This document shows, one piece after another, positions 6,274 to 49,103 of a DNA stretch of 64,000 nt (position 1 is its first letter; every line of letters starts with the position of its first letter). The notes beneath the pieces were generated by a model. It was not told the origin of the DNA. It was given only the letters and a program-made list of their open reading frames with translations, and ran no database searches. Location of the stretch: assembly GCA_907165135.1 (NCBI GenBank), contig OU015569.1, positions 2,480,001 to 2,544,000 of the forward strand, in the 5' to 3' direction. The stretch comes from Oikopleura dioica. Lineage: Eukaryota > Animalia > Chordata. The position numbers were made by a program, and so were the translations under genes.

Positions 6274-6373
6274 TCGAAGCCACTTTGCGGCTTCGTTTTC
6301 GAAAAAGCCGCTAAGCGGCTTTTCATTTAAGCTCTTCAGAACTCAGGTTTTCTACACAGGTTGTCGAGACCAG
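6274..6373. mobile_element. MITE family A, right-arm fragment
   Basis: AAAGCCGCTAAGCGGCTTTT..ACTCAGGTTTTCTACACAGGTTGTCGAGACCAG. Confidence 0.8.
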
Positions 6374-24500: not shown

Positions 24501-27500
24501 GAACATATTGCCAACGCTGCCGATAAAGAGTTGCGCCGTGAGCACGCTGAGAGCTTTGATGTCCGCGCCAGTCTTTCTCGCTGTGACGACTTTTCAAAAC
24601 GACTCAATAATGTCCGAAGTCCCGTTCGCGAGCTTGTAAACGAAATAAACGCTATGATTAACGACCCTAACCTTACCGACGGTGTTCTGAAAGGACGCCT
24701 TGAAGAAGCCGCTCAATCCTTGCAAAGTGCACAGCAAAAGCAGATGATAATGTTGCGGGAATTCAACATAAGATGAACGAATTGCAATCAGCGATGGATG
24801 CACTCGCAGTTACCCGAGCTATTCTCGAGAAGTACCAAATGACACTTTCTGCCGATTCTGTATGCTCGACTATCGACGATTACGAACACAAGATGGCATT
24901 GCTACAAGAACTCCAGAAGGAAATTCCAGAAAATGATCCGAAGTTCGCTGGTCTCAAGAGCCATTTGACCGAGTTACCAGACAATGACCTCGACAGAAAT
25001 AGACTAAACGTCGAGATGAATGATCATATGAATGAATGGAATCAGCTCAAATGGCAACTGAACATGGCCTTAGAAAGCAACAAGAAAGAGCTCGACAAGA
25101 AGATCAGAGAGCGCGAGCATGAAAACAGCGTCGGCTCGCTCCGAAGCAAGATCGCGGAATTCATCGCCAAGATCGAGAAAATGTCCGCTCAGCAAATTGA
25201 CGTACTCAGCGCTGAACACGAGATGACTGTAGCGACATTTTACAATGAGCTCCAGGCACAACAAGAAGTCCTTGACGTTTTCAACAATCGTATTGAAGGA
25301 GAGTACAAGGCGCTTCGAAATGAGTGCGACCAGCTTCAACTTCCCAATGAAGAATGCCAAGAACTTCAATCCGCCTGGGAGCGTGTCTGGAAGCTTACTA
25401 AGCACACTATCGATAAACTCAAAGCTCTCCGAGCGTACACAGAACAGGTTGAGAAAGCTCAGGCTGTTCTGGCTAAATGGACATTGGAAGCTGAGCGATT
25501 CGAGCGTGAATCTGAAAATGCCGATCCAGATTTCCTAACAAAACTTTCAAAAGATGCCCAACGTGCTTATGCTGCCACAAAAGAAGATGATGAGACCTTT
25601 GTTTTGTCCATTTTCGCTGCAAATATCTCCTCAGCACATGCGCCAGTTGCCCATGAAGCCCAAGATCGAGATATGGCCCAAGCTCAAAGCATTAGTGAGG
25701 ACCTATCAGCGCAGTGGAATGCGGTCAAACAGCGCCTCCAAGTGGCTTCGAAAACAGCTTTGAACAACTCGAAATTGAGACAAAGTGAGAATCAAACTCG
25801 CGAAGCTGGTAAACAGCTTGAATTTGTTTCCAATCTCAAGGATAGACTCACAAGACTTTCTGAGAAGATCACGAAGAAACTGAACACTCCCACTCCTCTC
25901 GAACTTTCTGACCTAGAAGTTGTTTTGACCGAAAATACCGCCTTGTCGACTGAAGTGAAAGAAATCGGCAGAGAAGTTGACATGACTTCAAAGAGTACGA
26001 TGGAAATGCTCCGAAAATCTCGCGATGTCGATACTGAAATCGCGACTCAACTCCGTAGCATGCTCGAGTCTATCACTGGCCTCTGGGGTCCAATTGATTC
26101 CGTCTGGAACGTTTACGAAGACAAATGCAGAAGATTCAGAAACTGTGTTGAAAAATATGGTGGAGCTCGAATTCAACTCGAAAACACTGAAGACGAGCTC
26201 ACTAGAATCGAGATCGTTTCGCAAACGGTTGAAGAACGGGACGAGAAGTTGAAGAGATTGAAAGAGCTCCAAGCTTCCTTCAGTCAGATTGAACCACTTT
26301 TCTTCAGCTTGGAGAGCTCGCACTCGGAGGTCAAATCTGTTGAAACTAGAATGCAAACTAAAGGTTTTTTAAAAAGTGCTAATGAATTCCGACTCATTTT
26401 CTTATAGGCTACTCTGATGAGTCATTTGAAACACTTACGGTGCTCGTTCAATCGCTTATTGCTCGATGGCGCAACGCAAAGACTGAGATCATTCGACGCC
26501 AAACTGATGTAAAGGATGCATTCGACAAGCTTGGCAAATTCAAACAGTCAATCAAGAAGCATGTCACTTTTGTCGAAAACAAGGAGAAGGAGCTTGACTC
26601 GATTCTTGCAACTCAAGCTGAAACTTCTGAAGCCATCCAGCGAAAATTGTCAAAAGTTGAAGGACTCCAAAAAGAAATCAACTCGCTTCAGGACGAATTC
26701 GTTCAGGTTCGCCAGCAAAATATTGATCATAAGACGTATGGTTTTCCTTCAGGTTGAAGAACAAGGAGAACAACTCAACGAAATCATTCGCGATGCCAAC
26801 GCTCATTGCGAAAAGTGGGCTGAAAGCTGCGAAAAAACGCTTTCTCTCCCAACTCTCGAGCGATATGTCGAAATTGAAATTGAGACCGTTACGAGAAAGT
26901 ACGACAAACTCGGCCGAATGGTCGCCGAGCAGATCGAACGACTGAAGATCAAAGTTCGCGAAACAAAGGCGCAAGAGGTTAGTGAAAAAATGAACGTGGT
27001 GACTTTAATGGTGTTTACTAACTGGGTGCTGTTTCCGATGCAAAAATGCATTTATTGTTCTTTTGCTATCCGGGTGTTTCTCTGTCTTCATTTACTGTCA
27101 TTCATTTCTAACTCGATAAGAGAAAAGTTCACGAAAACGCATGACTTTCATGGTTCTAAAACTTTGGTGTTCAAAAAAGGTGTTTTAAAAATGTGTGCTT
27201 TTGGAGATGATGAAAAATAAATATATCAAACACACTCAGGAGTCCGAAGCTCGTTATGAAATCGAGCAGTCCACTGTCACTCAGCGAGAAAACGACGTCA
27301 AGTTCGATACTGGATTCAAGGGACAAGCAAATCTTTCTTCCCTCGAGGTAAGCAATCTCTGACAGCCACAGTGGTAAAACAAATTTAGGGGTCTGGACTG
27401 ATTACAAAAGATCAAGCAGATAAGCTTGAACTTGGTGATCTCCTTCCGTCCGATCTTGATCTGCAACTGCGACCTTGGCTTTTCTGTGGAGAAGAGCCCG

Positions 27501-30500
27501 TTGCTGGTGTCATTCTCGAAGAAACTGGCGAGAAGATTACTCTAAATGAAGCTTGCAGAAGGAGCCTGCTCAGAAGAGGAACCACCCTAGAACTTCTTGA
27601 GGCTCAAGCCGCTGTTGGGAGCGTTATCGACCCCATCAGGTGAATATAGAAAAACTGATAGTTAAAAACTCAATGCGATGTTTTTGTGCAGTTTCTCATT
27701 ATTCTTTAGATCGGAGAAACTTTCTGTTGAAGAGGCGATAAGCAGGAATCTTCTTGACCCCTATCAAGTTGATGCTCTTCGCCGAGCAGAAAGAGCTGTT
27801 ACCGGCTGGCCAGATGCTCGTGCTGGAGGAAAACTTCTCTCACTTTTTGAAGCTATGCGACGAGGCTTAGTGGCCGACACTCGAGCGATTCGTCTTCTGG
27901 AAGCTCAGATTGCTACGGGAGGGCTTATCGATCCCCGAGCCAACCATCGAGTTCCAATTAATGTGGCTTTCCGACGAGGACTCTTCGACTCCGAAACCAA
28001 TCAAAAACTAGAAGACCCCACTGACGACACCAAAGGCTTCTTCGATCCCAATACGCAAGAAAATCTTACCTATATTGAGCTTATCCGACGCTGCCAAAAA
28101 GAGCCAGAAACTGGCTACCACTTTTTAGTGCTGCGTCCAAAGCGACGCGGCGAGGGACGCGCATCAAGAAGCTCACTGTGGAACGACACGCGTAATCAAT
28201 CCCGTGAGAGCCCAGCAAGCCGTAATTACAATCACTCTAATGCCCGATGCAAGACCCCAGAACATGTTACCAAATCAGCATCATCTACCTCTCAATCAAT
28301 CAAATCGAAAAGCGCCTCTAACTTGCCTACAACGCACCAATTGACAACGAAAAAGTTACGACGCGAAGATATCATGTTCACTGTCCCGAGTGGAATAGTC
28401 AGACTCACCGAGCTCATCGACGCTGGTTGTACTGACGAGACTGCTGTGCGCGAACTCGAGTGTGGAAAAATCACCATGGAAAAATTCCGACACTCGTTAG
28501 AACGATATTTGTCTGGTTTGCCACCGATCGGAGGAGTCAAAATCACCCATGGAAGTGGAGTGACTGAAATCCTTTCTATCTATGATGCGCAGCGTCGCCA
28601 ATTGATCGATCAGGATCTGAGTTTCTATCTTCTTGAGGCTCAGGCAGCGACTGGCGGACTTTGTGGACTTGGAAGCGCCAAGCGATACGATCTTCATACT
28701 GGATTTGAACAAGGCCTCATCGATAGAGAGCTCATTAGCGATTTGACTAATGGACTTTCTGCTGTGCTCGGTTTTGTTGGAAGAAATCGCTCACTCGTCT
28801 CGACTATGGAAGCAGCAAGAATCGGAATGATATCCGAAGACGACGCTCGCCGGCTTTTGTTCACCCAAATCGTTACCGGCGGCGTTTTCAATATTGCCAA
28901 TGGATTCCGATTGCCTCTTGACGTCGCCAGCAAGAGAGCGATGTGGACACGCAGCTGGGACAACATGGCTCCACAGTGCTACGAGTTCAACCAAAAAGCA
29001 ATGACTTATGAACAGCTTTGCGCCAAGTGCGAAAAAGATGAAAGTTCGCGATGTCTTCTTCTTCCTATTGCTGGAAATAAAAAGCCAGTTGGAAAACCAA
29101 TCCAATCCATCATGGGAACTCCTCTTAGCTTCTACCACCGTAAGTTTTTTCATAATGTATTCTAGTCACTCTTTTATCTATCGTTTTTTATCAGCTAGCT
29201 TGGATTTTTTCAAATCTAATCGAAAAATTCAGAGCATAAAATGATCTCTGACGAAACTTACGCTGCTGCTCAAGCTGGCTTCATGTCTGAAAGTGACTTA
29301 GAACAGCAGCTCTCTCGTCGACTCATTGGTTGTGAGCCTATTGCCGGCATCTTTGTCGAAGGTCGCCTGATGTCGATCTGGGATGCTTCTCGACAAAAGC
29401 TTATCAAACCTGGAAATGCCCTTGAGCTGATGGAGGCCCAAGTTGTGAGCACTGGTGCTCTCATCGATGCGATATATGGAAAGCTCACGGTCAACGATGC
29501 AATTCAAAACGGAGTGATTGATATGTCCACTGGCGATGCCCTCAACAGATCCCGAATTGCTTACAAAGGCGATAAGGATAAGAACTCTTTGAAGAGCATG
29601 ATGAACAAGGGCACCCTTGCTGAATCGAAAGCGCTCAGACATCTCGAAATTCAGATCGCATGTGGAGGCGTGATAGGTATTTGGAAGCTGAGATAGCAGT
29701 TTCTTCATGAAGTGATTTTAGAACCAAGAACTGGGCGATACTTTTCCATCCCACAAGCATTCGAGGCTGGCCTTTTGGAAAAGAACGACCTTCAAAAGAT
29801 TAGAAAAAATAAGTTCTTCACGGATCCAGATCGAGAGGAGCGACTGAGTTACTTAGAGCTATGTTTGAGATGTGTAAAGGACGACACGGGCCGCCTGTTC
29901 CTGCCAGTTCACCGAATCAATCTTGCCAAGACAAAACGATCAAAGCCACGAAAGAAGAAAATAGTCGTTGTTGATCCCAGCACATCCGAAGAGCTCAATT
30001 GCCAAACCGCGTTCAGCAGGGGTCTGATCGATGAAGAATTCTTTGTCCAGCTGCTCACAGAAGAGGGCAAGTCCCAAGAACAAATCGACGACATTCTCTA
30101 CGGAAAAAGCAAATCCATTCCTCTTACTGTAACGCATGAGCGCGAGTTAGGGTTATGCAGATACAAAGTTATTGAAAGAAAATCTTCGCATGCGGAATGA
30201 AAGAAAACGCACGTGAATAAGTAGCATGAAATTTTTAAATGCTTGATTACTTCGGCCTGGGCTCGGCAAACTGTGTAGAAAACCTGAGTCAGGTTTCAAA
30301 CAAGCTAAAATAAGCTTTTTTAAAAAAAGCCGCTAAGCTTTTAATTTTAGAACTTTTAGAACCTGACGCAGGTTTTCTACCCAGACTACCGAGCGCAGCT
30401 TTAGGAATTCTTTTATTTGAAAAATTTAGGTTAGGTTTAGATAATAAGAGATAATGAGTAGTTGTGCCACAGATTAGTTAATGCATCAAGTATCACCCAC

Positions 30501-31438
30501 TAACAGACCTCGATCGACAGCCGCCGCGATTCTAAATCTGACATTTTCTCTTGCACATCTTCCTCCGTTGATCTCGGATCAATTGCTTCCACACCAATGG
30601 GTTCTCGCGAACCTACCCCATCGCTTGGAGTTGTCTCCGCCGCTGAGTTAGAAAACCGTCTCCTGAAACTAGCAAAAGACGGTTTCCGCGTTGCGATCGG
30701 AGCAATCAAGGATGAGACTACTGGAGAAACAATTTCGATTTCCCAAGCGACTGATCGAAAACTGATTGACTCTGTTACCGAGCAGCGATTGCTCGAAGCA
30801 CAAGCAGTTACTGGAGGAATCATTCTTCACAGCTCCGGCGCGCGGCTCACACCGAATGAAGCTCTGAGCGCCAAGTACATCACCAACCGAGCGTTTTCGA
30901 CACTGACGGAGGCGTACAAAGCATGGACTGGCTTCTCAGATAGAAGAACTGGCAAACGCAATTGCTTGAGTCTGCCTGAAGCTCTCAAAAGCGGCTCAGG
31001 AAGTTATGAAGCAATGACGAGATTCTTGGAATATCAAATTGTTCTTGGAGGCGTGTATGACGTGCAGAAGCGAGAGTTCCACTCGCTACATGAAGCAGTC
31101 GATCATGGCTTGATCGAGAGTCGAAAGGCGGAGCGTTTAGCTGACTTTTCGGTAAAAATGTACTTTCCCCATCTATTTTAATTGGTTTCTAGCGTCACTC
31201 GAGACAGCTGACCGATCCCCGAACGAATCTAACGACGACGTATTCAAAGTTGGTTGACGCGGCCGAGGTCGACAAGGAGGGCATTCTCGTCCTCTCTGCC
31301 TGGCCTCGCAAGCAGCGCTCCCTCAAGCTTGACTCCGGCCTCACCGTTCGCGCTTCTTCAATCGCTTCATCCCGAGCTTCTTCCCGCGGCACTTCGCCAA
31401 CGCGCCACCTCGACACCTTCGATATTGGCCAGATCTAA
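18579..31438 (+). CDS. MACF1/DST/PLEC-like: Spectraplakin locus, plectin-like output: CH1-CH2 actin-binding domain, plakin domain with SH3, rod, plectin-repeat domains with linker, SR-rich tail
   Basis: [104 protein letters not shown]; SH3 end TLPPPNKLA; plectin repeats [14 protein letters not shown]; linker [17 protein letters not shown]; tail [12 protein letters not shown]; stop at 31438. Confidence 0.93.
19754..19917. mobile_element. MITE family A copy in a CH1 intron
   Basis: GCAACCTGTGTAGAAAACCTTAGTCAGG...CCTGACTCAGGTTTTCTAAACAGGTT; just after the donor at 19747. Confidence 0.85.
20309..20686 (+). CDS. Alternative first exon(s) of the spectraplakin between CH1 and CH2 (MGGCCSK..)
   Basis: The ORF from ATG 20309 splices in phase 0 through a 44-nt GT-AG intron (20687-20730) into the CH2 exon VEEIVIEG; contains RKRVTF. 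Confidence 0.7.
30256..30399. mobile_element. MITE family A copy in a plectin-repeat intron
   Basis: Both TIRs present; flanks CTTCGG and TTTAGG match at 4 of 6 positions. Confidence 0.85.
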
Positions 31439-31792
31439 CGCTTACTAACTCAAATATATATTTATAAATTTAACATTATTTTCACTTTGGCCTATTTTCA
31501 ATTTACGTTCACCTCAACCTCTGTCTCTTCTTTTTGTGACTAACTGTGCATGGAATTAAATACTGTATCTATTTATTACAGTGGCTAACTGTATATTATT
31601 TTATATATTTGAGTACTGATCAATCTGAGATCTTCGTTTCTCTGAACCTTCTTTTCAACCATTTATTCGAAAAAAATCCAAAAAAGCAAGAAAAAAAAAA
31701 GAAAATTCCTTCAGTGTTACGAATGGCTTACTACTATGACTACTTCAGTACTCTTATCTGTGAATACTTTGCTTCTTGCGAGTTCTGTGATG

Positions 31793-31798: not shown

Positions 31799-31884
31799 CT
31801 ATTCAATAATCTCAAATAAGGCAATCAAATGTTTGATTTTTGATTCTAAGACGTTCAGGTATTCGTTATGGAGATTTTTATTGG

Positions 31885-32060
31885 TCTGGGCTCGGCAACC
31901 TGCGTACAAAACTTGAGTCAGAGTCTGAAGTATCTCAAAAGAAAAGCCGCGTAGCGGCTTTTATAAAACGAGGCCACGAAGCGTCTTCGCCAGAATTTAA
32001 AGATTGATTGAAAAGATGAGAACCTGACTCAGGTTTTGTAGACAGGTCGCTAAGCCCAGA
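31885..32060. mobile_element. MITE family A copy
   Basis: Both TIRs and the central hairpin present; flanks TATTGG and AATTTG match at 4 of 6 positions. Confidence 0.9.
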
Positions 32061-32911: not shown

Positions 32912-35900
32912 TTGCCTGATACGCTGAAAGCAACTGGCGATGTAATAATTGAAATCGAGGAGATCATCGAAACAGTCGTCTCCCGCCGTCCCGTCGTAAA
33001 TGCCGCGGCAGGGTTTGCAGTGGAAGTGATCGAAAAATACGAACGCAGCGCGAAAATGACGTTAGACGATGATCGGAAACAAACGAGGAACGGATTCGGA
33101 AGCGCGTTCCCTTTTACGTTATCGTGATTTCCGATTTCTCCCCGGAAACTTGTGTTTTAACGCAATTCCTGCGAACTCAGACAAAGCTCTCCAGACAGCA
33201 GTCTGGAGAATGTGTTCACGCTCATCCTTGATCGAAATCAAGGACGAGTAAGGTGTAAATTTATTTATGAATTTGAATTCGAATCCCTTATACAGTTCTC
33301 GCCTGTCGAAGCTTGAATCGAACACGGAAGAAATGAAACGCAACTTTGAGAAACTTCTGGCTAGCTTTTTGAGCATGCAGGAGCAACTGAAATCCCATCT
33401 GTCAAAGTTACAATCGGAGAGGGATCTTTCTGGACTACAATCTGAAATGGAATCGATGCGATTATCTTTATTAGCTCTCAGTGATGGACTAAAAGTGACG
33501 CCCCCCGACGATCTCTTAGAAGCACAGACTAATTTTACAAAGCTCCAGCAACTGGCAAGGGAGTTGAAAGAAAAGAAACCAAAAGTGTTGGAAATTGCAG
33601 GTAATTATTTTTCAGTTTATTATTTCAATGCCTTGAGGAGGACGTAATCTAACAGGAAAGTGATGCGATATAAAGTCTTTTCTAGGTTTAGCGATAGCCT
33701 TTTTAGGTTTTAAGGAATAATTTTAATCAAGTATTATTTTAATTTATAAATCATCAAAAACCTGCCTCGAAGTCCAATTGTGGAGAATTGATCTTCTAGT
33801 TCTGGATAAGAAGACCTTATCCAAGACTCAAAGTTTTGCCATTTTTGGTCTGAAATTTTCCTTTTTGAAATCATAGAAGACTCTTTTGAAAATTCTTTAT
33901 ATCTCTTTTACCTGTATCTTCATTTCGGATCTTAAAGCTCTGGCAATATTGGATCAAAAAGCTGAAGGTTATCCAAAAGAATCTCTTACTCAATCGCGCC
34001 ATGGCAGAGACTAATAGCCTTTTTGTCAGATTGGAAAGCTTTATACTCGGCACAACTGTCTTTGCGTGCCTTGGTGATGCTAACGAGTTAAAACACGTGC
34101 GGATCACAGTAGAATATTAATGCTAAATGGAGCCCTGATTCGGAGAATTTTGTCACTTGCCAAGTATAATTCAAAATATAGAAACGGAGATGCGTAATTT
34201 ACACAAACAGATTAAATTGGAACATATCTTTATTTTTTTCTAGTTTTGTAACCTATCGTGAACAGAAATAATGGGTCAGCGTTGAATAGCGGTAGTACTG
34301 TGCTAAATTGCTGAAGGAGATTTGAAAGAACTCTCCGTTCTCGGACACGTGATGTCTAAAGATCGTGCTCGTAGTTAAAAGCTCGTAGACCTCTTCTTCC
34401 GATGTGCTTCTTTCGCCACCAAGGAGGATGATCTTCTCCCACACTTCGTTAAAAGTAGCGGCTGAGCGTTGCAGTGCCACGAAAGCATGCGTGACGAGCG
34501 CAAGTGCCTGACTGTCGCTAGAATCGACACTTGACTCGCTAGTTGAAGCTGTGAAACCGTGGTATTCGTGGACGCTCGGGCTCGACGCTGATGATTGAAT
34601 GCCCTCAGAGCCACTGTGACTCAAGCAGGGTTCAGAACTGGCTCTGGGCGGTTGGTTCTCGAGACGTCCTCTTCTGAATTCGCCTTGTTCAAAGTTGAAG
34701 ATTTCTCTGATGTCAAGCGCCATCGTGCCATTCGTGCAAGTCGGAGATGCATTTCTCGTTTGGCGTTTGAACTGCGCCTCAGGAATTTTGGCAACTTCTA
34801 CTGTCCAGAATCCATGGGAGCCTGTGCTCTTCTGTTTGACGAAAAACTCGCGCTGGACAAGATTGTGTCGTACAGAATCCCTCCAAGCTGATTTAGACGA
34901 GGCCAGTGCGGGAAAAAGCGCTTCGAGCTTTGAGTAGATTTGCCCCAGGCGAGCGCGTTTTTCTGGAAAAGTTCGAATCACGAGCGCGGTTAACACGCCG
35001 TAGGAAAATGGAGGCTTATCAGCTTTATTGTACACGCGGGTCTTCATCTTTTTACTTTTCAAAATTCGATATCAAAATCGACTATTTTTTCAAAGTTGTA
35101 TTCTTTGTTTTTGGATAACTGATCAGTACGATTTGTCTTTTTATTTTCGGAAGGGCGCCCGAAATGACGTCGGCGGCGAAGACTCCCGCCTCCCGAGCTA
35201 GACGGAATAGCTTCCTCCACTGCCTCAAGCTTAACTCGTATCAGAATCTTCACATATTTTCTCTCAAGAAATTTGCCAATTATGGAACATCGGACAAATA
35301 CATCACATAGGAAAAAATTATAAAACATATTCTCGTTGAGAATTTCGATTCTCTTGGTCTAAGATCCGATTATTCATCTGATCTAGTATGATGGCTGGAT
35401 ACTTACTGAAGTATAAGTCCAAATATGGTCAGGATTCTTAAATAAGAGAATATTAGGGGTACTCAATATTATTTCCTGACCCAGGCTTTTTACTCAGGTT
35501 GCCGGGCCCAGCCATAAGATAAGGGATTTTCTACTTCAGTCTGGGAAGTCTGGTCACAACTGGAAAGTCGGAATGGAATCAGTATCAGTTCAGAGGTGAT
35601 CTTTAGGAATTGGAAAACAGGTTATGAGTGGAATGTTAGGGAGAATCTTGTAGTTTCCCATTGAGACTTCCAATGTAGACATTGTCTGAGCAGTAACTTT
35701 CCGAACATCCTCAAAAAGTTGTTTTCAAGTCTGATTTCTGGATTCTCTTCAGTAAATATTCTACTTTAGCTACCTCCCGTTCGACTTCGCGAAACCAAGA
35801 CTTGAGTACTGCTGAAACCCAGCAACTTCACCTCGACGCGTCAACCCTGGAAGATCTTCTCCATGAAACAAGCACGACCGCAAGTGAAGCCTCGCGGTCT

Positions 35901-38900
35901 TACTCTCATCTAATGGGAATTTTGAGTGACTTTGAACAGGTAAAACTAATGCTCTTCATTAGCGCGTCCGATTCAAGCCGATCGCGGTTGTTTACTAGAA
36001 TATTAAAAATGGGTGACCTTGACTTTCTTGGTGCTTAATTTAGTGGAGCAGTGGCCATAGTCCCGCCCGCGGGGGCTCTTGGCATCTATTCTAATCGTTA
36101 ACGTTGAAAAATTCTGATATATTCTAGCTCTTCCTTACTCCTAAATTTGCCAAACAAGTTTCTTTTTTTTCCTAACTGGATTACTCCTTTCTGGAGTAAT
36201 TGGAAGTGACAGGAGCCGCCCTTCCTCAAACGCGGTAAGAAAGAGCGAGAGACCTTCAGGTTGAAGGGTGGGCCGCAGGTGCACGAAAATGCAAACAGTT
36301 TGGTGCACCCACCTGCACCACCAAATTGGCCAATGAATGTACCGAGCCTCTCCACGGCGCAAAAAAGGAACTCTCTCTCTCTCTCAACCGCGGTTTACCA
36401 AAACACCGCCGCCAGAATTTATCATTCCGACAAAAAACCTAAATTCTAGAGACACGAACTACTACAGAGCTATCTAGAAGAAGTCGAAAAAGAGTTAGAA
36501 AACGTCTCAGCAGGTAAATTTACTGAACGCGCTTCACTAATCGTCTAGTACAATAATACAACTAGTTGATGAATAATCATTTTTTTTATTTTTTAGTAAA
36601 TTATTCAAAATTTAATTTTATTTATTCTTATTTAATTTTGAATATAAAAGCTATTTTTCCTCTCATAGCAGAGTTTTCAAATTTTGATAAAAAAAAATAA
36701 ATTCTACCGCGATTCTCATTGCTGACTGACTACTGACTAAAATTTGCAGAAAAAAAAAATTTTCAAAAACAATTAAAATTCCCGCAAATATAAGTCAGTA
36801 GGAATTGATAATCGCGGTATATCATATATTTTCTCACTGAATAAGATATCATAATAGTGGTAGGATTCTTGTCCAAATATTTCCGCCAAGTCCTCCATAG
36901 TGTCCGCTAATAATCCTTGTCTCGACAGATGACGTCCTGTTGACGTGTGTGAAGGAGTTTTCCGTAAGGAATCCGTTCGAGTGAAAATGCCATCATCAAT
37001 AATGTCAGACTGACCGGATTTAGTTTTCCATGCGAATTCTTTACTTTTTTTTCAGTAAATGATGTCCTGAGCGACGAGACGGATTCTAACAATGTTTCTC
37101 GGGTGGAAAAACTTTCGCGGCTGAAGGACCTCGTCAGGGAGCTAGAAGGCGAGAAGAAGGCAGATCTGAAGCTGCTGGAAATGAGCAAGGAGAAGTACCA
37201 ATTGGCTAGCAAGGAATTCCGCCGCGCACTGCAGCTCGACGACGCCGGGCAACTCTTCGGCGAAGACGGACAACGACATCGCCTAGTCGACTCCAAATAC
37301 GAACGCGTCCAGCAAAATTTCGGTCTCCTCTCAAACAAGGTACAATTAGAGCTACGTAAGCCGCAACCGGAATTCCGAGCATTTTGACGAGCAAAATTGG
37401 CAGCGCAGCGGAATTTTTTATCGTCCATTTCTGAAATCCTAATGAGCAAAATCTTCGTTAGCATCCAACCGTTTCCACGGGGGAAATTTTAATTTCCAAG
37501 GTTTGAGGTAGACAAAGATCCCAAAATCAAAATATTGATGTCATTACGTATTTGCGAATATAATGATTTACGAAAATCGCCACTCATATAATATTTTTAC
37601 AACCGCTTTTATTCAGTTTATAATACCGGAAAATACTGCATGGTGAATAATCGTCGCCGTAAATTTCGCTCTGCGCTAAAAGGCGCATTCATCAAAATGA
37701 CTATTTGACAAAGAGAGTTTCCTTCTTCAACTGAATGCCTGAGTCCCTTTTCGCTTATCAGTAGCTCCTAAAACTACACGTGAGCCAAGTCAAGCACGCA
37801 GCCAATGCTGGCACGTGAGAAAAGGCGCTACATTTTTTCCAGAGAGAATGAATTGAATCAATGTTCCTAGGCCCGGTTTCATGCAAAATAAAATGCTCAT
37901 CTTTTTGACGTCCTTTTTTTGATGCCGATTGAGAATTTCTCGATGATGAGCAGTTTTGTCTGCCGCTTGCAGACGGCGTTTGCGTCATTTGGCTATATTG
38001 GAAAGGGTCTTTTCGTAGAAAAATCATTTAATAATTTTAACGACCTTTCCCAACCTAAAGGGCTTTACCTCTTCTTTTCGGACTTTTGCTCATTCTTCTG
38101 CCGATTCATTCTTTTTACCGTCGGAGTGGACCAAGAGTGAGTCCCTTGTTCTGCGCATTTGTCAGGAGAGCATCGCTTTCTTATTTCTAGCAGGTGTCAT
38201 TTTATAGGTTAAGGAAGACAAAGACGGTGGTGACTCGGCTTGGGCGAGAGTGATTTTACGAGTTTAGAGCAAAATTTTGATCCTTTTTCCTCCGCGGATC
38301 AGCACTAAACAAATAGCGGCAGCTACGTGGGAGAATGTCAACTGAAAATACGAAGAGACCTTGAACGAACTCGAGCTCTGAGCTGTGCGATAGTGTGAAG
38401 CTCTCTTTCTATCTATCCCCACGGGAGGTCCCGTCTCTGCTCGCACGCATGCTGAGGAAGCCACCTTCCCTTTTTCAAATACCTAACCTCAGCTAGATAC
38501 CCTCCTTCTTACAACGTTACAAAGGAGCTCAGCCGCGCGGCAAATCAAACCACTGGCACGAGCAAGGACCAACTGTCCCTGGTCAGTTGCTCAGCGCCAA
38601 AACTGCAAAACTCACTTCCCTGCCACAAGAAAATTAAGAAAGAAAAAGACAGAGAGGAAAATTGAATGACTCATGGGAAGAAAAGCTTCTGAAGCGTGAA
38701 GATATACACTAGAGGTACTACAAGAAGAACAATCTAAGAAGAAGAAAGCATGGGAGTGTGCGCCTCCAAACCAAAGGCACGGTCAATATTTACAGTAACT
38801 CTTTTTGACTGAATTCGATTTAAAAATATGTAGAATCTAATGGAAGTTTAATTTAGACGGCTTTAGATAATAATAATTATTTTCTAAATTTCAATCAATT

Positions 38901-41900
38901 TAATTAATTACTTTCAAAATTTTTTGTTTAAAGTCAAAAATAGCATAATTTTCTAAAATAAATTTCTCGTTTTTTTTTCTTTCCATCGATATCTAAATTT
39001 TGGAATCTAAAAGAACCAAAAACACGATAATAAAAAACGCTGCGTGGGCTAAGCTAAATTAGAATCACTGTGTCTCTTTCTAATTTTCTCTCCATTTTAC
39101 TCTGATGACCGTAAAATAGACCGATGAAATCGACATCGAAGAGCCTCCAAAGACGATCAAGTCAGAAGAAGGATCCGATTCTCTGGATCAGAATTACTCG
39201 TTGAATTCTTATGCTGGCGTCTCATCAGTTTTGGGTTTTTCCTATAATGAAAAGGGTCTTAATCAACGAAGAGGCTTCTTAGATAAACAAAGAGCCAACT
39301 GAGAGAGAAAAAGGCCAACCCAAAATTAGATCAGATGGAAGAGTCACTCACAAGGCAAAAAATAAGTGCATTGGAATCGTTAGAAGCCTACATTAAAGAC
39401 GACATTAACGCAAGGTCCATTGGCGATTATTTTACAGTCAATGTAATAGTTAAGAAGCAGATCCTGCGATTTGATCGAAGGAGAAGCGCTAGAATCGACA
39501 GCAAGTGTCGAAATCAACCGAATCAATGACACAGTCGCCCGTCTTCGCCAATCCATCTCGACATTGGATTTGATCAGCGAACCAGCGCTCGTCGCTAATG
39601 CCAGTCCTTACGAGAAGCCGCTCTTTGCCTCGCCATTTACAAACTCGGAGCTTTCGCTCGAAAGCATCACCAGTGATCTCGGAGGCTCAATAAGCGCCAA
39701 AAGCCCCTCACACTTGAAATATCAGTTTCTTGTCGACAGCCGAGTGCCACCAACATTGTCCCCTTTATCAGCACGCAGCGCTACTAGGACTTCTTCGGAA
39801 GGAGAAAACTCGCAGCAGGAAGAGGCAATTATACTTATCTATAAGCAGGACTTGGCTCGACAACATGCTTAGAAAATCTGAGTCAAGTTTTAAAGGGTTT
39901 TAATGAAAAGCCGCTTAGCGGCTTTTTAATAATCGAGGCGCCTTCGCAAAATTACTATTTCAATCTATTTTCAGATTCTGGCGAAGCCGCTTTAGGTTTA
40001 CTTAGGTTTTAACACATGTTGCCAAGCACAGAAGCAGGAGAAATAAAACAAACAAAGCAGAAATCCAGAATTTTCCTTTTAAAAATCTATTCAGGCGGCG
40101 GAAAAATTCCAAGCTTATGGAAATGTGCTAGAAGTCTGGAAAGAGTACGAAGGAGTTGAGCTCAACTGTAAATCATGGCTACAAGAAGCGGAAATTCGAC
40201 TTTCTGTTATGGGAGCGCCAAGGTAAGCGCTAATTACAGCCAAAAAAAGTGGCAATTTTAATCAGTTTATTGTTTTGGGATAAACGCGCCCGGGTCACTA
40301 GACCTATGTTTTCCTTCAAACACGTTGTTCCGAGAAGCTAAAATTTATAATTAACGGGAAATCATAGCACTGACTTGGCAACTTTGAATGAGCAAATTAT
40401 CGACGCTAAAACTGCGCGGCACGATGCTGATGGCCACAAAAACTCCTTCAAGCGACTGGATCAAACTGCACGGGCGATTGGTCGACTTGGGGACGAGCTT
40501 GTTTCTCATCGAGACCAGCAACGCGTCTCCCGTCAAACTCAAAAACTGCGCCAAGGCTTCCAGGCCCTGTCGGATAAAATCGACATGAAGGTGAAAGAAC
40601 TAATGGAGATGGGCAACGAATTGCAGCAACTCCAGGAGAAAATCACAAACGCAAACAATGAAGCAGAAGTCGCCGCGCGAGTCCTAAAGGAAGTTTCTCG
40701 AGCTGCAAGGGCTGATAAAAACTTGCTAGAAGAACGACGAGATAGGCTGAAACTCTCGCAGACGGAGATCAAACGGGCAGAGCGTGAAATCAAGGAGTCA
40801 GGGGAAAAAGCAGCGCTCAAGGTTTTGTCAAAATGTGGCGAAGAAAACGCACGTGCAGTTCGAGAAAAGCTCGCAAGCGCTCAAAGACGAACAGAAGGCG
40901 TCGTCGAGGATATCGAAAAAGAAGAGCGAAAACTTTCAAGAATGATTGAGCTTCTAAGCGACTTCGAAAATCACGCTGATCACTTGGAGAATGAAATCCA
41001 AACATTGCAAAATCCAAAAGCCTGTGAAGTGAAACTCGGCAATTTGCGCGAATCGGCGTCTTACCTGCTCGATTCCGGCAACTTCTCGGATCACAGTCCC
41101 GTCACACTGAGGCTTGATCGCTTGAATCGTATGCTGGCGAATGCTTCGGAGCAGAGCAGAGAACGAAGGAATGCACTTGAAAACGAAAAGCGACGGGAAA
41201 CAGAGCGTGAGCGCGAGTTTGAAAATGTCAAAATCGAGCTCGGTCAATTCGATGTCGTTTCTATTCAAAGCCTTGCGAATCTGCCCGCTGACCTCAACAA
41301 GCTTGACAATTTGATAACAAAGTGGGAAAATCTCGAGCCCAAGCTCGAGTACTTAGAAAGCACCTCTGAAAGTCCAATTATGCAGCCAGGCTCGACTGCT
41401 TCTCTTCGCAGAAGAAGCAGAACAAGAAGACAGGGCGGCACACTCCCGAGGAATTCAGGAAGACTTTCTGGAGCGTCTGCTTCCGGTGTTGAAGGTTTGA
41501 GATTGAAGTACGAGAGCATTGGAGACAGACTAATCAACACAAGAAACGTGGGCCAAATACTTCTAGAGCAGCTTGAAGTGTGGCATTCGAACCAGGTGAA
41601 AGCAGAACACATCATGAAAAATCTGGCTGACTCGTCATCTTTGATATCAGCGATGGGAGACGTGGCGGAAGCCGTGCGTTCCGGCAAAGCTGTTATCACT
41701 ACATGTCGCACCAAACTAGATAACGAGCCCAAGGACCTTCCGAAATTAGAGTCGGAAGTCGACCAACTCCAAAAACAATTTAACGATGTGCAACAGGAAA
41801 TCATGGACGCGCGATTGTCCAAGGATCAAAAATCAAAAGACATTGATCATTGGCAGCAGCGCTTTTAAATCTCTCCGACTGGACATCCGATCAATGGAGT

Positions 41901-44900
41901 CTCATGTCCGTGCTGGGGAAGATTTCGGCTGATCCGGCGATTCTAGAGCCACAGAGGCAGCAAGTTGATGCGCTGCTGAGTGAGTTTAACTCGCGAAAAG
42001 AGCGATACAACCAGCTTCAAGCGGACTGCCTATCTTTGAACGATTCGAGCAAAAGTCAAGATATGAAACAACTGAGCTCGAGGTGGAATGAATTGGAGCA
42101 AAAACTTGAAGAGCGTAAAATAGCAATCGATGAGGCGCTAAAATGCACGCGCGAGATCGAGCAAGAAACTGCCAAGCTACAAGACTTCCTAACTACTGTT
42201 ACTGCTGACTTAGCAATATCAAGCAGACTGCCACCAGTTCCCGATTCAGTTGAAGATTGCCTCAAAAAACTCAAACAGCACCAAACCCAAGTGACCGAAA
42301 TGGAAAAGAGTGCCAAACTCGCCCAGCAAGCAGCAGAATTTCTTGCACAAGTTGCCTCTGGAGCTGAAAATCATGGCAACAAATCGCACTCGGTCGGACA
42401 AGCACTTTTCATTTCAACCAAAAAGTTGGACGAAAAAATCGGCACTCTCACAGAATTGCTGGCTAACATCGATGAAGCGTATAAACTGAGATCTGAGTTG
42501 TTCAACTCGATCAATGCGATTGAAAAGGGACCAACATACGGACGGGAAGAAATTAACGCTCTGAGATCAAAGTATGACGAGCTCGTTTCGCTTGTAGAAG
42601 ACATCAGTGAAAACACGTCGCCGATTCGTAATAACTCGCTACGAGAAGACAAGCGCTCCATTCAGCGAAAGATCAAAGCGCTAGAAACGGGCTTAGACCA
42701 GCGTGAAAGGGACGAGTCACGAAGAGCGCGAAAACAGGCGCAGCTGCTGTCATTTATTAACGAACGGGAACAGCAGATTGCGTCCACACATGAGGGCGAG
42801 GCTCAACCTGACGCCATTCACCAGAAAATCACACTCGTCCAAACTCTTAAGGATGAACTCACCGCGCGCATGGGCGAACTGAAGGCTCAATTCGGCGGCC
42901 CCACTGATTCACAAGTTCAACAGAGCTTCAACAATCTCCTCGAGAAGAGCACCGATAGAGCTAAGGAGCTTCAGGATGCGAAATTGCAAGCAGAAGAGCT
43001 CGACGGACTCCTCCATGATTTCAACGAATGGGCGGAGGACTCCCTGGAAAAGATTCTCGCTGCTACGAACTTAAAATCGCCCGAGACTCTTTACGAAATG
43101 CAGGTTTGTCACAAATAAGCTTTTTCTTACAGGCTCAGTACTTGATACATTTTTGAAAAAGTTGGGTTATATTGGCAAATGTCGAGCTCATCCCTCAGCA
43201 GAGTGGCGCAGCGGAAGCGTGCTGGGCCCATAACCCAGAGGTCGGAGGATCGAAACCTCCCTCTGCTATATACCCATATTTTCTTTTTTTTTCTCATAAC
43301 AAAGATTCTAGAGACCTCCTACTTATTATTCTTTTAGACAATGATGGAGGAGTGCAAAGACCAACGCGGTGAAATCGAGCTTATTTGCTCTCTGCTAAAA
43401 GGTGTCGAACCAGCCGGAAAACGATGGGGAGGAAGACCTTTGGAGCAAGTCCACTCTGATGCTCTGCACACTCTCGATCGCATCAAGAGCTTGCTGAGTG
43501 AGCGAACAGAAGCCGCCGACGATGCTCTCAACCGAGTCAAGCGCTTCGAGGAGTCGATAGAGAAGCTCACCGCTTGGTACAGAGAGATCGGCGACGACCT
43601 TGACAAGATCAAATCGGCGCTAGACTTGACGGAGCCGGAAGTAATCGATAAAATGGTCGACGATGTTGGTAGAATCTCCACCATTCTTCAATCGAAAATG
43701 GCGACACGGGAAATTATGTCCAGAGAGTGTCAAATGATGAATTTCGATTTGGCTGAAGGGATGAAGGATAGTGTCGAGGAGAAGCTATCCAAACTCGAGA
43801 GCACAGCTTCAGAAACAGAACTGAAATGCAGAGAGCTTCAAAATCTTCTTGAAAAGGTTCAACGCGCGAGCACGAAATATGCAGAAGTGCGAGACGAGCT
43901 TTTGCCATGGGTTGAAGACATGGAGGTGCGGTTAGATCAATTTGACGACGTTTCCCTACCAGATGAGAGCCTCATTGAGGATCTCAGCCAGATGAGTGAA
44001 GAGATTGCAGAACGACGTCTTCTCGCTGACCGCCTTGTTCTCACCGCTGATAAACTCGCGCCTTTAGGAGCGATTCAAGTCAAGAACGAAGCAGCACAGA
44101 TCTCGAGCAGATATTCCGACATTCGCGAACGCTGTCGACAGCGTAAGAGAGAAACTCAACAACTCGCAATCGAACATCAGCAGTACTCGGAGCGTCTTAA
44201 CAATCTGAACAACGCTTTGCAGCGGATTGATGAGCGTCTATCGAATAGCGATCGCCCCGAATGCAACGTTGAAAAGTGCAGAGCCGCAATGGCGGATTTG
44301 AATCAACTTAGCAAAGAATTGGACAAGCTAGAAGCTGCGAAAACGACGCTTCAAAAGACCGGTCAAAGCCAACTTAGCGATCCCAAGATAAATTCAGAGC
44401 TGGCAAAGATCGATTCGACATGGGATCATCTCCAGAATACGCTCAAGAACAAGCGCGATCGATTGAGACAAACAGAAGCTGCGTCTGAGCGATTTTGGGC
44501 GAAAAACTCTCAGTTCCAGAATCAACTGGATCAGCTTGAAGGCGAGCTGCGAGAGATCAAGCCAACGCACGATGGTAAACGGGATATGGATCAGTTCGAG
44601 AAGAAAATTACAGCAATGGCCGGCTTGAATAAGAAAGTATCTGACACAGCCCGAGATCTTGGCTCATTAGGCGAAAATTCCGAAGCGCTACGCATGGCGC
44701 GAGAGGGTCAATCACAGCTCGATAGAATCGCCAGGAATATGCAACAAAAGCAGAACGAGATCGAAGCGGCTGCCAAAGAGCACGAGAATATGCAGCGAAA
44801 AGCGCGAGAGGCACTTTCGTGGATGCAATCAGCAGATGTGCGCTTGAAAGCACAGGGAGAGCCAAACTCTCCGGACGACTGCCGGGAAAAACTGAGAGTT

Positions 44901-47900
44901 ATCTCCGACATTAAAAATCAAGCGCCCAAGTTCGCTGCTGCTCTTCCAGCAGCATCGTGGAGACAATTCGAGAACCGTTTGGCGGAAGAGGTTAGGGACA
45001 CGGAAAACAAACTCATTTCAATGGGCCACTTTGACCAGGCGCTAGATGAGATTTCCGACTGGACAAGTAGGTGTTCAACAACTCTGAGCTCAATCGGACA
45101 AGATGCTAGCGCACTCCAAACTGATTTTGCCAGGGCAGAATTGATCATGTCCGAACTTGAATCACGCCAACGAGCGCTAGAAAAGCTCCGCGAAACAGCA
45201 GTCGAAAGATTTCCACTCAAGCAAAAGCGCCTTATTGCTATTTCTGATAACTTATCGAAAATCGGATCCATAGCAAGTACAAAACACGACGTTATTCGAA
45301 GTAGAATCGAAGCCGCAGAGTCAACAGAATTGAAAAAGAAGAAGGTTCAACGATGGGCTGCTGATATTCGAGAGTATCTTATCAATGACGGGCCCTATTC
45401 AGGATCCTCCGAGGGCGCGAAAGCTCAATCTGATGAATGCCGGAATAAAATTTCGGAAATGGTGAAACAACGAGGTGAATGCCCTGCAGCGCTGCCTGAT
45501 GTTCGCTGGCAACAGATGGAGACTGCTCTTTCTGAGCGCAAGAACAAGCTCGGCAATTTACAGCTCGAGGTTGATACCTTCTGGGATGCTGCAAAGAAAA
45601 TGGACAAGTCCCTCGGTCAATTTGAGTCGCAAATCCAGAAGATGCAGCCACCATCAGTTGTCGAAGACTCTACCAACTTGCAGATCGAACAAAATCGCAA
45701 ACTTGAGGATGATATTCGCCTGAAAACGAACCAAGTAAAAACTATCGAAGATCTTTCTGGCTCTCTCCGAGCGAACATCAACAGAGAAGACGCAATCCAA
45801 GTTAAAAATGCAGCTTTGAGCATTCACTCTCGCTGGGAAAAATGCTTGCAAGCGACCAACAGACGTAACTTGGCCCTAGAAGAGAATAGAAAACGCGCCA
45901 CAAAATATTCCGAAATGGTTATTGAGCTCGTTGACTTTATCGAACTTTCTCGCTCAAAACTGGAAGAGGCCAAAAGCAGCTGCGATCCTAGAAATGGGAA
46001 ACGACTGCTAACGAAGCACAGCGAAATCGAACGAGAAATAGCACGCAATGAAAAGGGTTACGACAATGTCAAAAAAGAAGCCGCTCATCTTTTGAAAATT
46101 GCAAAGCTACCGAGTGATGTCACGGCGATAGAAGTAGAGTTGAAAGACATCCAGAACAAATGGGGAAATCTGCAGAACTTGAGCTGGAACTTCGTAAAAG
46201 ACCTTCAAGACTCGATGGTCTCTTCTGGTCGCTTAATAGATGCACTCGAGTCACTAGAAGAGTGGCTGATTAAAGTAGAACCAGAGTTATCGGAACGCCG
46301 CCCATTAGAAGGCGATTTAGATACAGTCGAACGACTCCTTGAAAATCACCGCGATTTCAAACGAGAGCTTGAGGAGCGTGAACGGAGCTTTTCCGACATT
46401 AGACGACTCGTTGTTGATTTATCGGAGCAAGACGCTGCTTGGATGCGCCCTCAAATCTCCGGACTTGGCTCTCGCTGGGAAAATTTGAGAACTCTTTCTC
46501 GTCGCCGGGACGATAAACTTGCCAGAGCTAAGGTGAGAGCTCAAGAGTTCCAGGACGAAGTTAACAATACGCTCAACTGGCTTGCCATTGCCGAAGAAAG
46601 GCTTGACAATATCGCCATGCTCTTAGACGGAGATACTTCTGGATCGTTACTGGACAAGGCAAAGCGCAATCAAAGCGATCTAGTTGCGGATATGGACAAG
46701 AACAAAGCCCAACTTGATCGTGCAGTTCAACTTGGAAACGGAATTCTCACAAATGCCGATCCTGATGCTGTGGGCACTCTTAAACACTGGCTTGGTGCAC
46801 TCACTGCTGGCTGGCAAGAGGTCCAAGCTTGGATCGAACAGCTCGGCGAAAGAATAAAACGAATAGAGAACGACGATGCGGACGCCCAGCAACGTCTAGA
46901 TGCGCTACTAAACTGGCTGACCGGAGCACAAGATCAACTTTCCATTCGAAATCGCTCGCCCCTTCCAGCTGATATCACGCGTTTAAAACAACTCGCCGCT
47001 GAGCATCAACAATTTCAAGAGGAAATTCTCGCCAGGCAAACCGAATTCGACGAGCTCATCAGAATTTACAAGAAGAATTCAAGCTCTAATGTGATGCGAG
47101 AGAGCTACGGCTCGCTAAAGCGTAACACAAAAATAACAAATCAAGGACTTGTTGAATTCAAGAACTCAAAAGCCGCTCTGCTCAGCGGAACTTGGCAATC
47201 AGGTAAAGAAACTTATTTCGAAAAATATCTTCACTAACGTATTTCAGTTTGGCTGGCAGCTCTAGAAAGGCAGCGCGCAATTGCGAATGCCTTGGATGGT
47301 GCAGAGGAGAGTCAGTTCGACTTCGACACTTGGAGAAAGCGATACATGGCTTGGATGAACCATAAAAAATCGAGAGTCATGGAAACCATGCGCTCGTTTG
47401 ACAAGAACAACACCGGTTTCATTGAAAATAAACGTTTCATTAATGGCGTTATTGACTCTGGATTTGACACCAATGAACGAGAAATGCGAAAGGTTAGTGC
47501 CAGATCCTCCTCTATGATATTTATCGTTGTAGGTGGTTAAAATGTTTGACCGGGACGGAAACGGCCAAATTGATTACTACGAGTTCATCAGCGCGCTGCA
47601 TCCTCGCGATCAGTACAAGCCAGAAACAGACGCGGCGAAAATCGAGGACGAGGTCATTCGTGAAGTCAGCCGCTGCCGATGCTGCGAGCGATTTGCTATT
47701 CACCAGATTAGCGATAACAAATATCGAGTACGTATTATTTTAACTCATCATTCAAATGTTATTCCAGCTCTCATTCAAATTTAGTTTGGTGACTCTCAAC
47801 AACTCCGTCTGGTGCGAATTTTAAAGTCGACTGTCATGGTCAGAGTTGGCGGCGGTTGGATGGCGCTAGAAGAGTTCCTGAGCAAAAACGATCCTTGTAG

Positions 47901-49103
47901 AGGTAAATTTACTTCGAAATTGAGTCTGTATTTGTACCTAGAAATTCTTCATTAAATATTTTTTGTTTTCAGTTCGGCGACAAGGTAATATCTTAACAAA
48001 TGTCTCGACGTTTTTTTAAATGTTTTCACGGCACGATAATGATTATTTGCCACTTGAAAAGGGATAGATATTGATTTTTAAGGCGCCTGTCGTAAAAAAT
48101 GGGCCAGCTCCAAGAGGTTGATTCGCTGCAACTCTGATCTCTCGCTTCCTTCTACTTTCTCCGTGGACACTAGTGGCTCGGGCGAGACCTTCTCCTCGTC
48201 CGGGCTACTCGTGGGACATTTCAGTGGCTCGCTCACCGATTTGGACCGCGACGAGAGCCTGTCAATGACGGGCTCGACGTTGTCCACTAGCTCCGACCTA
48301 CCGCGGATCAAAGGCTCCAAAATTCCTTTGAGAAGTAATCTCGCTTTCTATTCTAACTCCTCTCTTTCACTCTCCATACTAAATGCTTTCCAAAATCATC
48401 TTTTCAAAAATCTCACCAACTCACGTTTTCACAAACTCATACGGTATGAGTCATACCAGAATTGCACGAATGAATGTCGATCGTCACGATTAAATAATAA
48501 TTCGAAAGCTAACATCCTTTAATTAGCCCGAGGAAAAGTGGCTCCAAGAAGCGATGGGTTTCCTACTGATCCACTCGCTGACGGAGTGTCTCAGACAATG
48601 TCAGCTTTCACGCGAAAATCCCGTCGCGATCGCCACAACTCTACGAGCAGTCAGCAGCCCATCAGGTAATTAAGGCCTCCTAAACTCTATCTGATCACAA
48701 CAACATTCAGAACAACGCCTACAGATCGTCCAAACACTCGCCCAGGATCGCGCATTCCCTCCCGCAACCCGTCGCGTTCGAATTCTAGAGCCGGTTCACG
48801 TGCAGGCTCGCGCGATCCCTCGCCTCACAATAGAATTCCCAATCTTTCCGTTCTTTCCCCCAAGAGCTTGACTCCGCAGGGCTTGATTTCTCCCATGAGC
48901 CACCGCAGTAGTGGGCGCAAGGTGAGTCCATGAACTCTTTTTTTCTTTCTTTCTAACGAGTTCAATCGCAGACACCGAGCGGCTACAAAACTCCATCCGG
49001 CAGAAAAACGCCCAGTTCGAATTCAAAAACCGGCGATTCGGACATCGCCGAAGCAGCCCGCCGACTTTACACGCTTCAAACCGAGAGAAACTCGAAACTC
49101 TAA
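32912..49103 (+). CDS. MACF1/DST-like: Spectraplakin locus, MACF/Shot-like output: spectrin repeats, EF-hands, GAR/GAS2 domain, GSR/SxIP tail
   Basis: Phase-consistent exon chain (33296-33601, 35770-35940, 36450-36513, 37056-37339, 40095 onward). [54 protein letters not shown]|[53 protein letters not shown]; stop at 49103. How it joins the 5' part is not determinable from sequence alone. Confidence 0.9.
34253..35047 (-). CDS. FOXH1-like: Intronless FoxH-like forkhead transcription factor, antisense within a spectraplakin intron
   Basis: [59 protein letters not shown] matches FoxH1-type hallmarks (DKPPY, ALVI, WxVDVxxIP, AxD). It lies wholly inside the phase-1 intron 33602-35769. The start ATG is inferred. 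Confidence 0.8.
   Translation of the reverse strand: MKTRVYNKADKPPFSYGVLTALVIRTFPEKRARLGQIYSKLEALFPALASSKSAWRDSVRHNLVQREFFVKQKSTGSHGFWTVEVAKIPEAQFKRQTRNASPTCTNGTMALDIREIFNFEQGEFRRGRLENQPPRASSEPCLSHSGSEGIQSSASSPSVHEYHGFTASTSESSVDSSDSQALALVTHAFVALQRSAATFNEVWEKIILLGGERSTSEEEVYELLTTSTIFRHHVSENGEFFQISFSNLAQYYRYSTLTHYFCSR
35475..35512. mobile_element. MITE family A, solo right TIR
   Basis: CCTGACCCAGGCTTTTTACTCAGGTTGCCGGGCCCAGC. Confidence 0.7.
36705..36819. mobile_element. Small TA-bounded inverted-repeat element
   Basis: TACCGCGATT..CTACTGACT / AGTCAGTAG..AATCGCGGTA; only one copy in this window. Confidence 0.45.
38750..39824 (+). CDS. Second alternative N-terminal exon chain (MGVCASK..) inside a 2.75-kb spectraplakin intron
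   Basis: Exons about 38750-38794, 39120-39233, 39330-39413 and 39461-39824 are phase-compatible. They join the phase-0 spectrin exon at 40095 through a GC donor, or a GA donor at 39849. Confidence 0.6.
39850..40032. mobile_element. MITE family A copy with a perfect 6-bp TSD
   Basis: AGCAGG at 39844-39849 and 40033-40038 flanks the TIRs. Confidence 0.9.
43197..43268 (+). tRNA. tRNA-iMet: Initiator tRNA-Met (CAT), intronic
   Basis: AGCAGAG/CTCTGCT acceptor stem with an A1 pair, CTGGG/CCCAG anticodon stem with CAT, GATCGAAA T-loop typical of eukaryotic initiators, and a T-run terminator downstream. Lies in intron 43104-43337. Confidence 0.98.

Follow-up and report, generated by a model that had tools for sequence, protein, structure and literature searches.

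We analyzed a 64,000-nucleotide (nt) stretch of the Oikopleura dioica genome (GenBank assembly GCA_907165135.1, contig OU015569.1, positions 2,480,001 to 2,544,000, forward strand; hereafter the window, numbered from its first letter), in which a single spectraplakin gene takes up the + strand, starting before 20 kb and reaching about 48.5 kb. We consider it likely that an alternative coding start, conserved in relatives, sits in the intron that separates the spectrin-rod exon with its end at 37339 from the one beginning at 40095; it would give an isoform of rod, EF-hands and GAR domain with a predicted myristoyl/palmitoyl anchor. This intron is 2755 nt long and both its boundaries are in phase 0. 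Within it, an ATG at 38750 and four stop-free exons run in frame into the rod exon at 40095. A previous reading made from the sequence alone had proposed this chain, and it was borne out by the stop-free frame, the coding score and the conservation described below. The exons and the elements around them are as follows, with a slash marking a splice boundary.

37067 to 37339, + strand: upstream constitutive rod exon, phase-0 end LLSNK/GTACAA, in-frame coding score 0.41
38750 to 38776, + strand: exon 1 core, the ATG and 8 codons (MGVCASKPK), probable donor AAG/GC
38777 to 39119, + strand: intron 1 in the GC-AG model, 343 nt, its ends paired by a 7-bp stem (38779-38785 with 39106-39112)
39120 to 39234, + strand: exon 2, acidic, AG acceptor, donor G/GTTTTT, leaving phase 1
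39330 to 39414, + strand: exon 3, donor AG/GTCCAT, followed by a 46-nt intron
39461 to 39824, + strand: exon 4, Ser-rich, with a conserved motif, donor GAG/GCAATT in phase 0
39847 to 39993, no strand assigned: copy of a repeat resembling a miniature inverted-repeat transposable element (MITE) in intron 4, holding the stop that closes the exon-4 open frame
40095 to 40222, + strand: first exon common with the full-length rod, phase-0 acceptor, 98% amino-acid identity to the related locus L003

Coding signal and conservation in related lineages

Coding potential was scored as a codon-usage log-odds trained on the large exons of the spectraplakin gene, exon 1 being below the scorable length. Exons 2, 3 and 4 scored positive as coding in the claimed frame only, and the score of exons 2-4 exceeded that of all 227 stop-free intronic stretches of at least 40 codons. 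A whole-library protein search with the exon-4 frame returned two short open reading frames (ORFs) of close relatives (Logan and TARA contigs) and one low-complexity match. Further loci were recovered by word-index searches using P0001 (one of these matches), the next rod exon and the first exon of locus L010 as queries; exons were searched singly. Judged by how closely their constitutive exon matches the window (96%, about 73%, about 72% in two cases, and 57% identity), the recovered contigs come from at least four further lineages. Wherever a locus reached far enough upstream, tblastn placed counterparts of exon 1, exon 3, exon 4 and the rod exon with their order unchanged; it also placed exon-2 homologues in L001-L004. 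The exon-1 homologue of L008 and the exon-2 homologues of L008 and L010 were placed by inspection.

The comparison of the window with L003 gave the clearest picture of constraint. Exons 2-4 were 77-81% identical in protein, and the nucleotide changes in exon 4 fell mostly at third positions (52, vs 19 and 12 at the other positions), while the introns of the two loci could not be aligned. The unique coding part of L003 is 588 nt long and in frame; in the window this part measures 591 nt (197 codons) if the donor is 38776, and 609 nt if it is 38794. Overall, comparison across lineages confirmed that these unannotated exons are real and conserved in relatives. A Pfam search of the unique exons and of the relatives' homologues detected no domain. 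The linker encoded by exons 2-4 appears to be lineage-specific, because the library search with exon 4 found only close relatives.

Two clades further connect these exons to the ATG itself. In the L010 clade, one uninterrupted ORF of 117 residues, with a stop upstream, spans both the ATG and the exon-2 homologue; the junction between exons 2 and 3 of L010 is ambiguous and was left unplaced. In L008, the chain is open through 697-716, 1365-1723, 1849-2011 and 2414-2867, with the rod exon at 3203; the four unique exons amount to 996 nt, their donors are GT, GT, GC and GT, and a GT-AG intron interrupts exon 1 past codon 6, splitting codon 7. The exon-2 acceptor of L008 uses the two bases left by exon 1, and reading it from a phase-0 donor gives a stop after five codons. 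From their structure, the exons belong to the lipid-motif ATG in both clades, in L008 because the exon-2 acceptor is out of phase with any phase-0 upstream donor. In the L010 clade, about 3 kb upstream were without a rod exon, and the short form might there be a free-standing gene.

The start motif M-G-[VI]-C-[AT]-S-[KR] was kept in all the lineages recovered. MGVCASKPK is present in the window, L001, L003 and L004; in the L010-15 loci and in P0015-18 the start reads MGICASKPKTKEI; and L008 starts with MGICTS, followed by a GT-AG intron and then (R)PKTK. In the window, the ATG has a good Kozak context and a TAA in frame five codons 5' of it; all six loci compared have such an in-frame stop, at a distance of 5-9 codons upstream. 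The first 27 coding nt were 93% identical between the window and L003, vs only 41% for the 27 nt upstream, and the differences within the exon 1 core were silent and at third positions. Across lineages, the silent codon variation comprised GGA/GGC/GGT, TGC/TGT, GCC/GCT/GCG, TCC/TCA/TCG, CCA/CCG and AAG/AAA. On this comparison, the conservation pattern at the start codon is that of a translated, constrained N-terminus, because the changes in the motif are mostly silent, the 5' flank is unconserved and in-frame stops lie upstream.

We compared the motif by eye with the pattern recognized by N-myristoyltransferase. The PROSITE PS00008-type pattern has Gly2, a Ser, Thr or small residue at position 6, no Pro at position 7 and an uncharged position 3. 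Three versions of the residues fit it: the window has G-V-C-A-S-K, L010 has G-I-C-A-S-K and L008 has G-I-C-T-S-R. Cys4 was invariant, with both TGC and TGT occurring, and Lys or Arg at position 7 and Lys at position 9 were found in all lineages. Gly2, Cys4, Ser6 and Lys/Arg7 are those that an N-myristoylation and palmitoylation motif requires, and acylation is predicted. A second start with a motif of this type had been proposed by the sequence-only reading, and it held up: at least four lineages retain it, and most of the changes between them are silent.

Splice junctions of the start unit

The exon ends at 39234 and 39414 give GT donors (39235 and 39415) and an open frame, with the split codons G/AT and AG/A. 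The earlier junctions were right at their four acceptors (39120, 39330, 39461 and 40095) and one base short at two donors: ends at 39233 and 39413 leave GG donors and a broken frame. The claim that the last donor is non-GT proved correct, the site being 39824/GC. We found no in-phase GT donor of good context in exon 4, whose last in-phase site is 39824/GCAATT, and this GC aligns with the canonical GT donors of L010 (GAG/GT) and L008 (AAG/GT). The alternative donor formerly offered for this exon, 39848, was rejected, as it lies inside the MITE-like repeat and is unconserved. Members of this repeat family are inverted at their ends and carry a GC hairpin in the middle (AAAGCCGC..GCGGCTTT); other copies lie at about 6302-6984, 8398-8485, 18342-18408, 30324-30379 and 31883-32013, and L001 carries a different MITE-like copy at the same place in intron 4.

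Candidate non-GT donors starting with G were found at 39824/GC in the window, at AAG/GA and AG/GC in L003 and at AG/GC in L008, all read from DNA. The GC donors of L003 and L008 (both AG/GC) sit at the place of the window GT donor 39415. At this homologous phase-2 position of exon 3, the window uses GT (39415), while L003 (1054) and L008 (2012) have GC and L010 (3660) probably has GA; the dinucleotide of this donor appears to turn over while the position of the site stays. In O. dioica, median introns of 48-51 bp and 11-12% of introns with non-canonical boundaries (other than GT/AG) have been described (PMC8008620).

For exon 1, the unspliced frame from the ATG meets GTAACT at 38795. The in-frame GT donor at 38794 given by the sequence-only reading is therefore present, and its use (38794/GTAACT) would append ARSIFT to MGVCASKPK. 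However, the GC donor at 38776 is probably to be preferred over it, because L003 and L004 have AAG/GA at exactly the position of the window AAG/GC, because the product is colinear with L010, and because a stem pairs the ends of the resulting intron. L003 and L004 lack a GT beyond exon 1, and their reading frame meets a TAG once codon 14 is passed. Splicing at AAG/GC gives KPK/TDEIDI, colinear with the unbroken KPKTKEIEI of L010. The chance of a stem of at least 7 bp was 0.029, and L003 and L004 have a 5-bp stem in the same register, though their intron is 119 nt long vs 343 nt in the window. Intron 4 was examined for a stem closing its ends, and the best was only 3 bp. Use of 38794/GT is possible in the window and in L001. 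A 42-nt element in intron 1 (39033-39074, L003:672-713), which includes TGCGTGGG, is conserved between the window and L003 with 5 differences, in an intron that could not otherwise be aligned.

Upstream sequence, RNA data and alternative explanations

Two conserved elements were found 5' of the ATG.

38186 to 38590, no strand assigned: conserved non-coding block, 71.6% identity to L003:85-468
38667 to 38673, + strand: TGACTCA, an AP-1/TRE-like heptamer within ATGACTCATGG, about 80 nt 5' of the ATG, also at L003:536-542 and L004:174-180

Sub-blocks of 38186-38590 were more than 90% identical to L003, a nucleotide conservation above that of the coding exons, and the block was missing from L008 and L010, which are more distant. 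For the intron and the conserved leader, whether taken from the window or from L003, an Rfam search gave chance-level matches only, and folding of 38320-38600 on both strands gave z-scores of -1.1 and -1.6, making no case for a structured RNA. Two short upstream ATGs also arise in the TGACTCA region, one at 38666 and one at 38673.

RNA was drawn from three poly(A)-primed runs (X5-7) carrying the same species label and from one marine metatranscriptome (X1), and reads were mapped on 36600-41900 at an identity of at least 90%. The 38186-38590 block was covered by X5-7 reads and by a 233-nt X1 contig, X1 being empty on the constitutive exons. The few reads mapped at 38370-38723 were partial and 90-95% alike, and their loose ends equal L003/L004 exactly, not the window. 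Poly(A)-primed reads of this sister lineage are colinear through the conserved leader to about 50-75 nt from the ATG. The block may serve as a 5' leader or as a promoter region, or may yield a promoter RNA or an independent RNA. That runs X5-X7 come from a diverged lineage under the same label fits with cryptic species within this label.

Several points weigh against the proposed start. On the exons themselves, the depth of X5-7 was zero, constitutive exons included, and no junction read, cap site or spliced-leader site was seen in these data; the reads over the leader could derive from pre-mRNA or from a separate RNA. This blank is uninformative on the expression of the exons, because X5-7 stem from the L003-like sister lineage, whose exons are 72-86% identical in DNA and fall under the mapping threshold. 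The library representatives searched contained no annotated long protein with exon 4. The exon model relies on GC at two donors, the choice of first donor between 38776/GC and 38794/GT is ambiguous, and lipidation is a prediction from sequence. A TATA box was inconsistent (TATAW in 3 of 6 loci, at differing distances) and was dropped as evidence. Finally, exon 37067-37339 and the ATG exon both end in phase 0 in the window, and either would join 39120 in frame.

This last point also favors the reading in which exons 2-4 act as cassettes within the full-length transcript (37339 to 39120) and the ATG is unused as a protein start. The RNA data do not discriminate between the two. We consider the cassette reading unlikely: the invariant MG[VI]C[AT]S[KR], its silent changes, the unconserved 5' flank and the in-frame stops would be left unexplained. 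The phase in the window permits a cassette, and gene structure argues against one in the two distant clades, where the exon-2 homologue is either fused to the ATG behind a stop (L010) or requires the two bases of exon 1, with a stop after five codons from a phase-0 donor (L008). A small nested gene of about 200 residues, which would terminate within or beyond exon 4 without ever being spliced to the spectrin rod, would fit the continuation of the exon-4 frame to a stop at 39870-39872, the weak GC site at the exon-4 donor and the lack of a Pfam domain in the unique region. It is nevertheless quite improbable, as the read-through tail lies in the unconserved MITE-like insertion, whereas every lineage has a phase-0 donor at the corresponding place (in L010 and L008 it is a canonical GT), and this donor always precedes the phase-0 acceptor of the rod exon.

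The ATG could alternatively open only a short conserved upstream ORF or micropeptide (14-23 residues unspliced), with downstream translation beginning elsewhere, e.g., at MEESL in exon 3. Gene callers did begin their ORFs at MEESL, and the unspliced frame of L003/L004 stops after 14 codons with no GT donor beyond. However, the N-terminus of L010 and P0015-18 continues unbroken into the exon-2 homologue, and the same colinearity is obtained in the window and L003 given the AAG/GC or AAG/GA donor, respectively; in addition, the conserved stem pairs the intron-1 ends, and exon 2 is under coding constraint though it has no ATG of its own. We rate this explanation a shade below the nested gene. As for functionless open frames arising by chance in the intron, nothing beyond the RNA gap speaks in their favor, and they are left with practically no credibility by the codon usage, by divergence biased to third positions and by conservation across at least four lineages whose introns are unalignable. 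A coding start at 38750 spliced to the rod is the explanation that we retain and develop below.

Gene architecture, proposed isoform and known systems

Domain calls across the locus were based on a Pfam profile search. SH3_10 (plakin-type SH3) was found at 21594-24776 (2.3e-09), plectin repeats at 27678-29165 (6.2e-46) and spectrin repeats across 41850-47237 (7.5e-44 within 43341-47237). Together with the 3' features below, the locus combines a plakin SH3 and plectin repeats with a spectrin rod followed by EF-hands and GAS2/GAR, which identifies a spectraplakin.

47292 to 47955, + strand: EF-hands and GAS2 (GAR), shared 3' part, Pfam EF-hand_1 2.4e-06, GAS2 5.7e-16 in 47533-47955
48118 to 48522, + strand: C-terminal tail ORF, Ser-rich, with a SKIP (SxIP-type, EB1-binding-like) motif at ORF residue 67

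The plectin-repeat exons (29241-31440) close with a stop near 31437, with an AATAAA near 31795, and the rod exons restart near 33297. An ORF of 269 residues lies on the - strand at 34253-35062, within a spectraplakin intron. A second lipid-type start was observed at 20309-20776, where MGGCCSK has the same MG-x-C-x-SK layout as the start at 38750.

In the proposed isoform, the transcript would start, or be trans-spliced, upstream of the ATG at 38750. Splicing would run from 38776 (or 38794) to 39120, from 39234 to 39330, from 39414 to 39461 and from 39824 to 40095, then through the shared rod exons, omitting exon 37067-37339 and everything 5' of it. The comparative data support that these exons leave out the CH, plakin and plectin parts and lead into the rod, EF-hands and GAS2; the sequence-only reading had proposed a form with spectrin repeats, EF-hands and GAR and without the actin-binding and plakin domains. 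The predicted protein would begin with MGVCASKPK and an acidic, Ser-rich, lineage-specific linker of about 190 residues, followed by about 20 spectrin repeats, EF-hands, the microtubule-binding GAS2/GAR domain and a tail with the SxIP-type motif, and would be without CH domains, plakin domain and plectin repeats. As expected from the motif and from what is established for N-myristoyltransferase and for motifs of the SH4 type, the protein would lose its initiator Met, Gly2 would be N-myristoylated and Cys4 S-palmitoylated, with Lys7 and Lys9 contributing charge. The N-terminus of the rod would then be held at the membrane and the C-terminus on microtubules.

Spectraplakins are thought to contact membranes indirectly, through actin, plakin-domain partners or spectrin. 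If the proposal is true, the isoform would be a direct membrane-to-microtubule tether needing no actin-binding or plakin head, a simple link in which a lipid anchor replaces the whole head. It would also be a clear added case of diversification by internal starts, in a very compact chordate genome. More generally, metagenome contigs from cryptic lineages, with differing intron positions and one frame, can validate unannotated exons and non-GT splice sites without matching RNA.

Among known systems, the short dystrophin products Dp260, Dp140, Dp116 and Dp71 arise from unique first exons within introns and are N-terminally truncated proteins with rod and C-terminal parts. They resemble the start unit in having internal first exons in a gene of the spectrin superfamily, but dystrophin belongs to another gene family, its short products have no lipid anchor, and its promoters have been shown experimentally. 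SH4-type proteins with dual acylation (Src-family kinases, G-alpha i, yeast Vac8 with MGSCCSC) share Met-Gly, Ser6, a basic residue 7 and a nearby Cys; the likeness is one of motif, with no homology implied, and acylation of the window protein is predicted.

Within the spectraplakin family itself, several promoters are employed. The plectin-type 3' end followed by resumed rod exons resembles the pair of alternative 3' ends of C. elegans vab-10 A/B, in which a plectin-type 3' end lies upstream of MACF-type rod exons in one locus (PMC3352950). As there, the plectin repeats and stop of the window precede the resumed rod exons, but the vab-10 isoforms are described with a common 5' start and no internal lipid-motif start (PMC3352950). 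The mammalian BPAG1a3 (dystonin isoform 3) uses an alternative first exon, and its product begins with a conserved myristoylation motif (PMC3352950; 10.1101/122010). It is like the 38750 unit in being a lipid-motif alternative first exon of a spectraplakin gene. However, the BPAG1a3 exon joins CH2, the plakin domain and the full rod, whereas the 38750 exon would enter the gene product only past the plakin and plectin parts and the first exons of the rod, leaving no actin-binding or plakin head; the start at 20309 (MGGCCSK) is a better positional analogue of BPAG1a3. That appendicularians keep a dedicated rod/EF/GAR isoform with its own internal start and a myristoyl-Gly2/palmitoyl-Cys4 anchor, besides a BPAG1a3-like lipid-motif start further 5', is a broader proposition that we regard as evenly balanced.

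Drosophila Shot type D provides the headless counterpart, with N-terminal variants made from an alternative start without both CH domains and probably without the plakin domain (10.1101/122010). The likeness lies in a headless form obtained through an alternative start; the Shot lead sequences are given no lipidation motif in 10.1101/122010, and the window lead sequence is unrelated to them, the exon-4 search having found no homologues outside close relatives. With Shot type D (10.1101/122010) and the motif exon of BPAG1a3 (PMC3352950) as precedents, the isoform class has more precedent than the sequence-only reading, which knew none from vertebrate spectraplakins, had supposed. A full-text literature search on spectraplakin internal promoters found no paper, and the reviews PMC3352950 and 10.1101/122010 describe no form that consists of rod, EF-hands and GAR alone and also begins at a lipid-motif start. 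A first exon with a myristoylation motif and a headless form are each known singly in spectraplakins, and the proposed isoform would combine the two.

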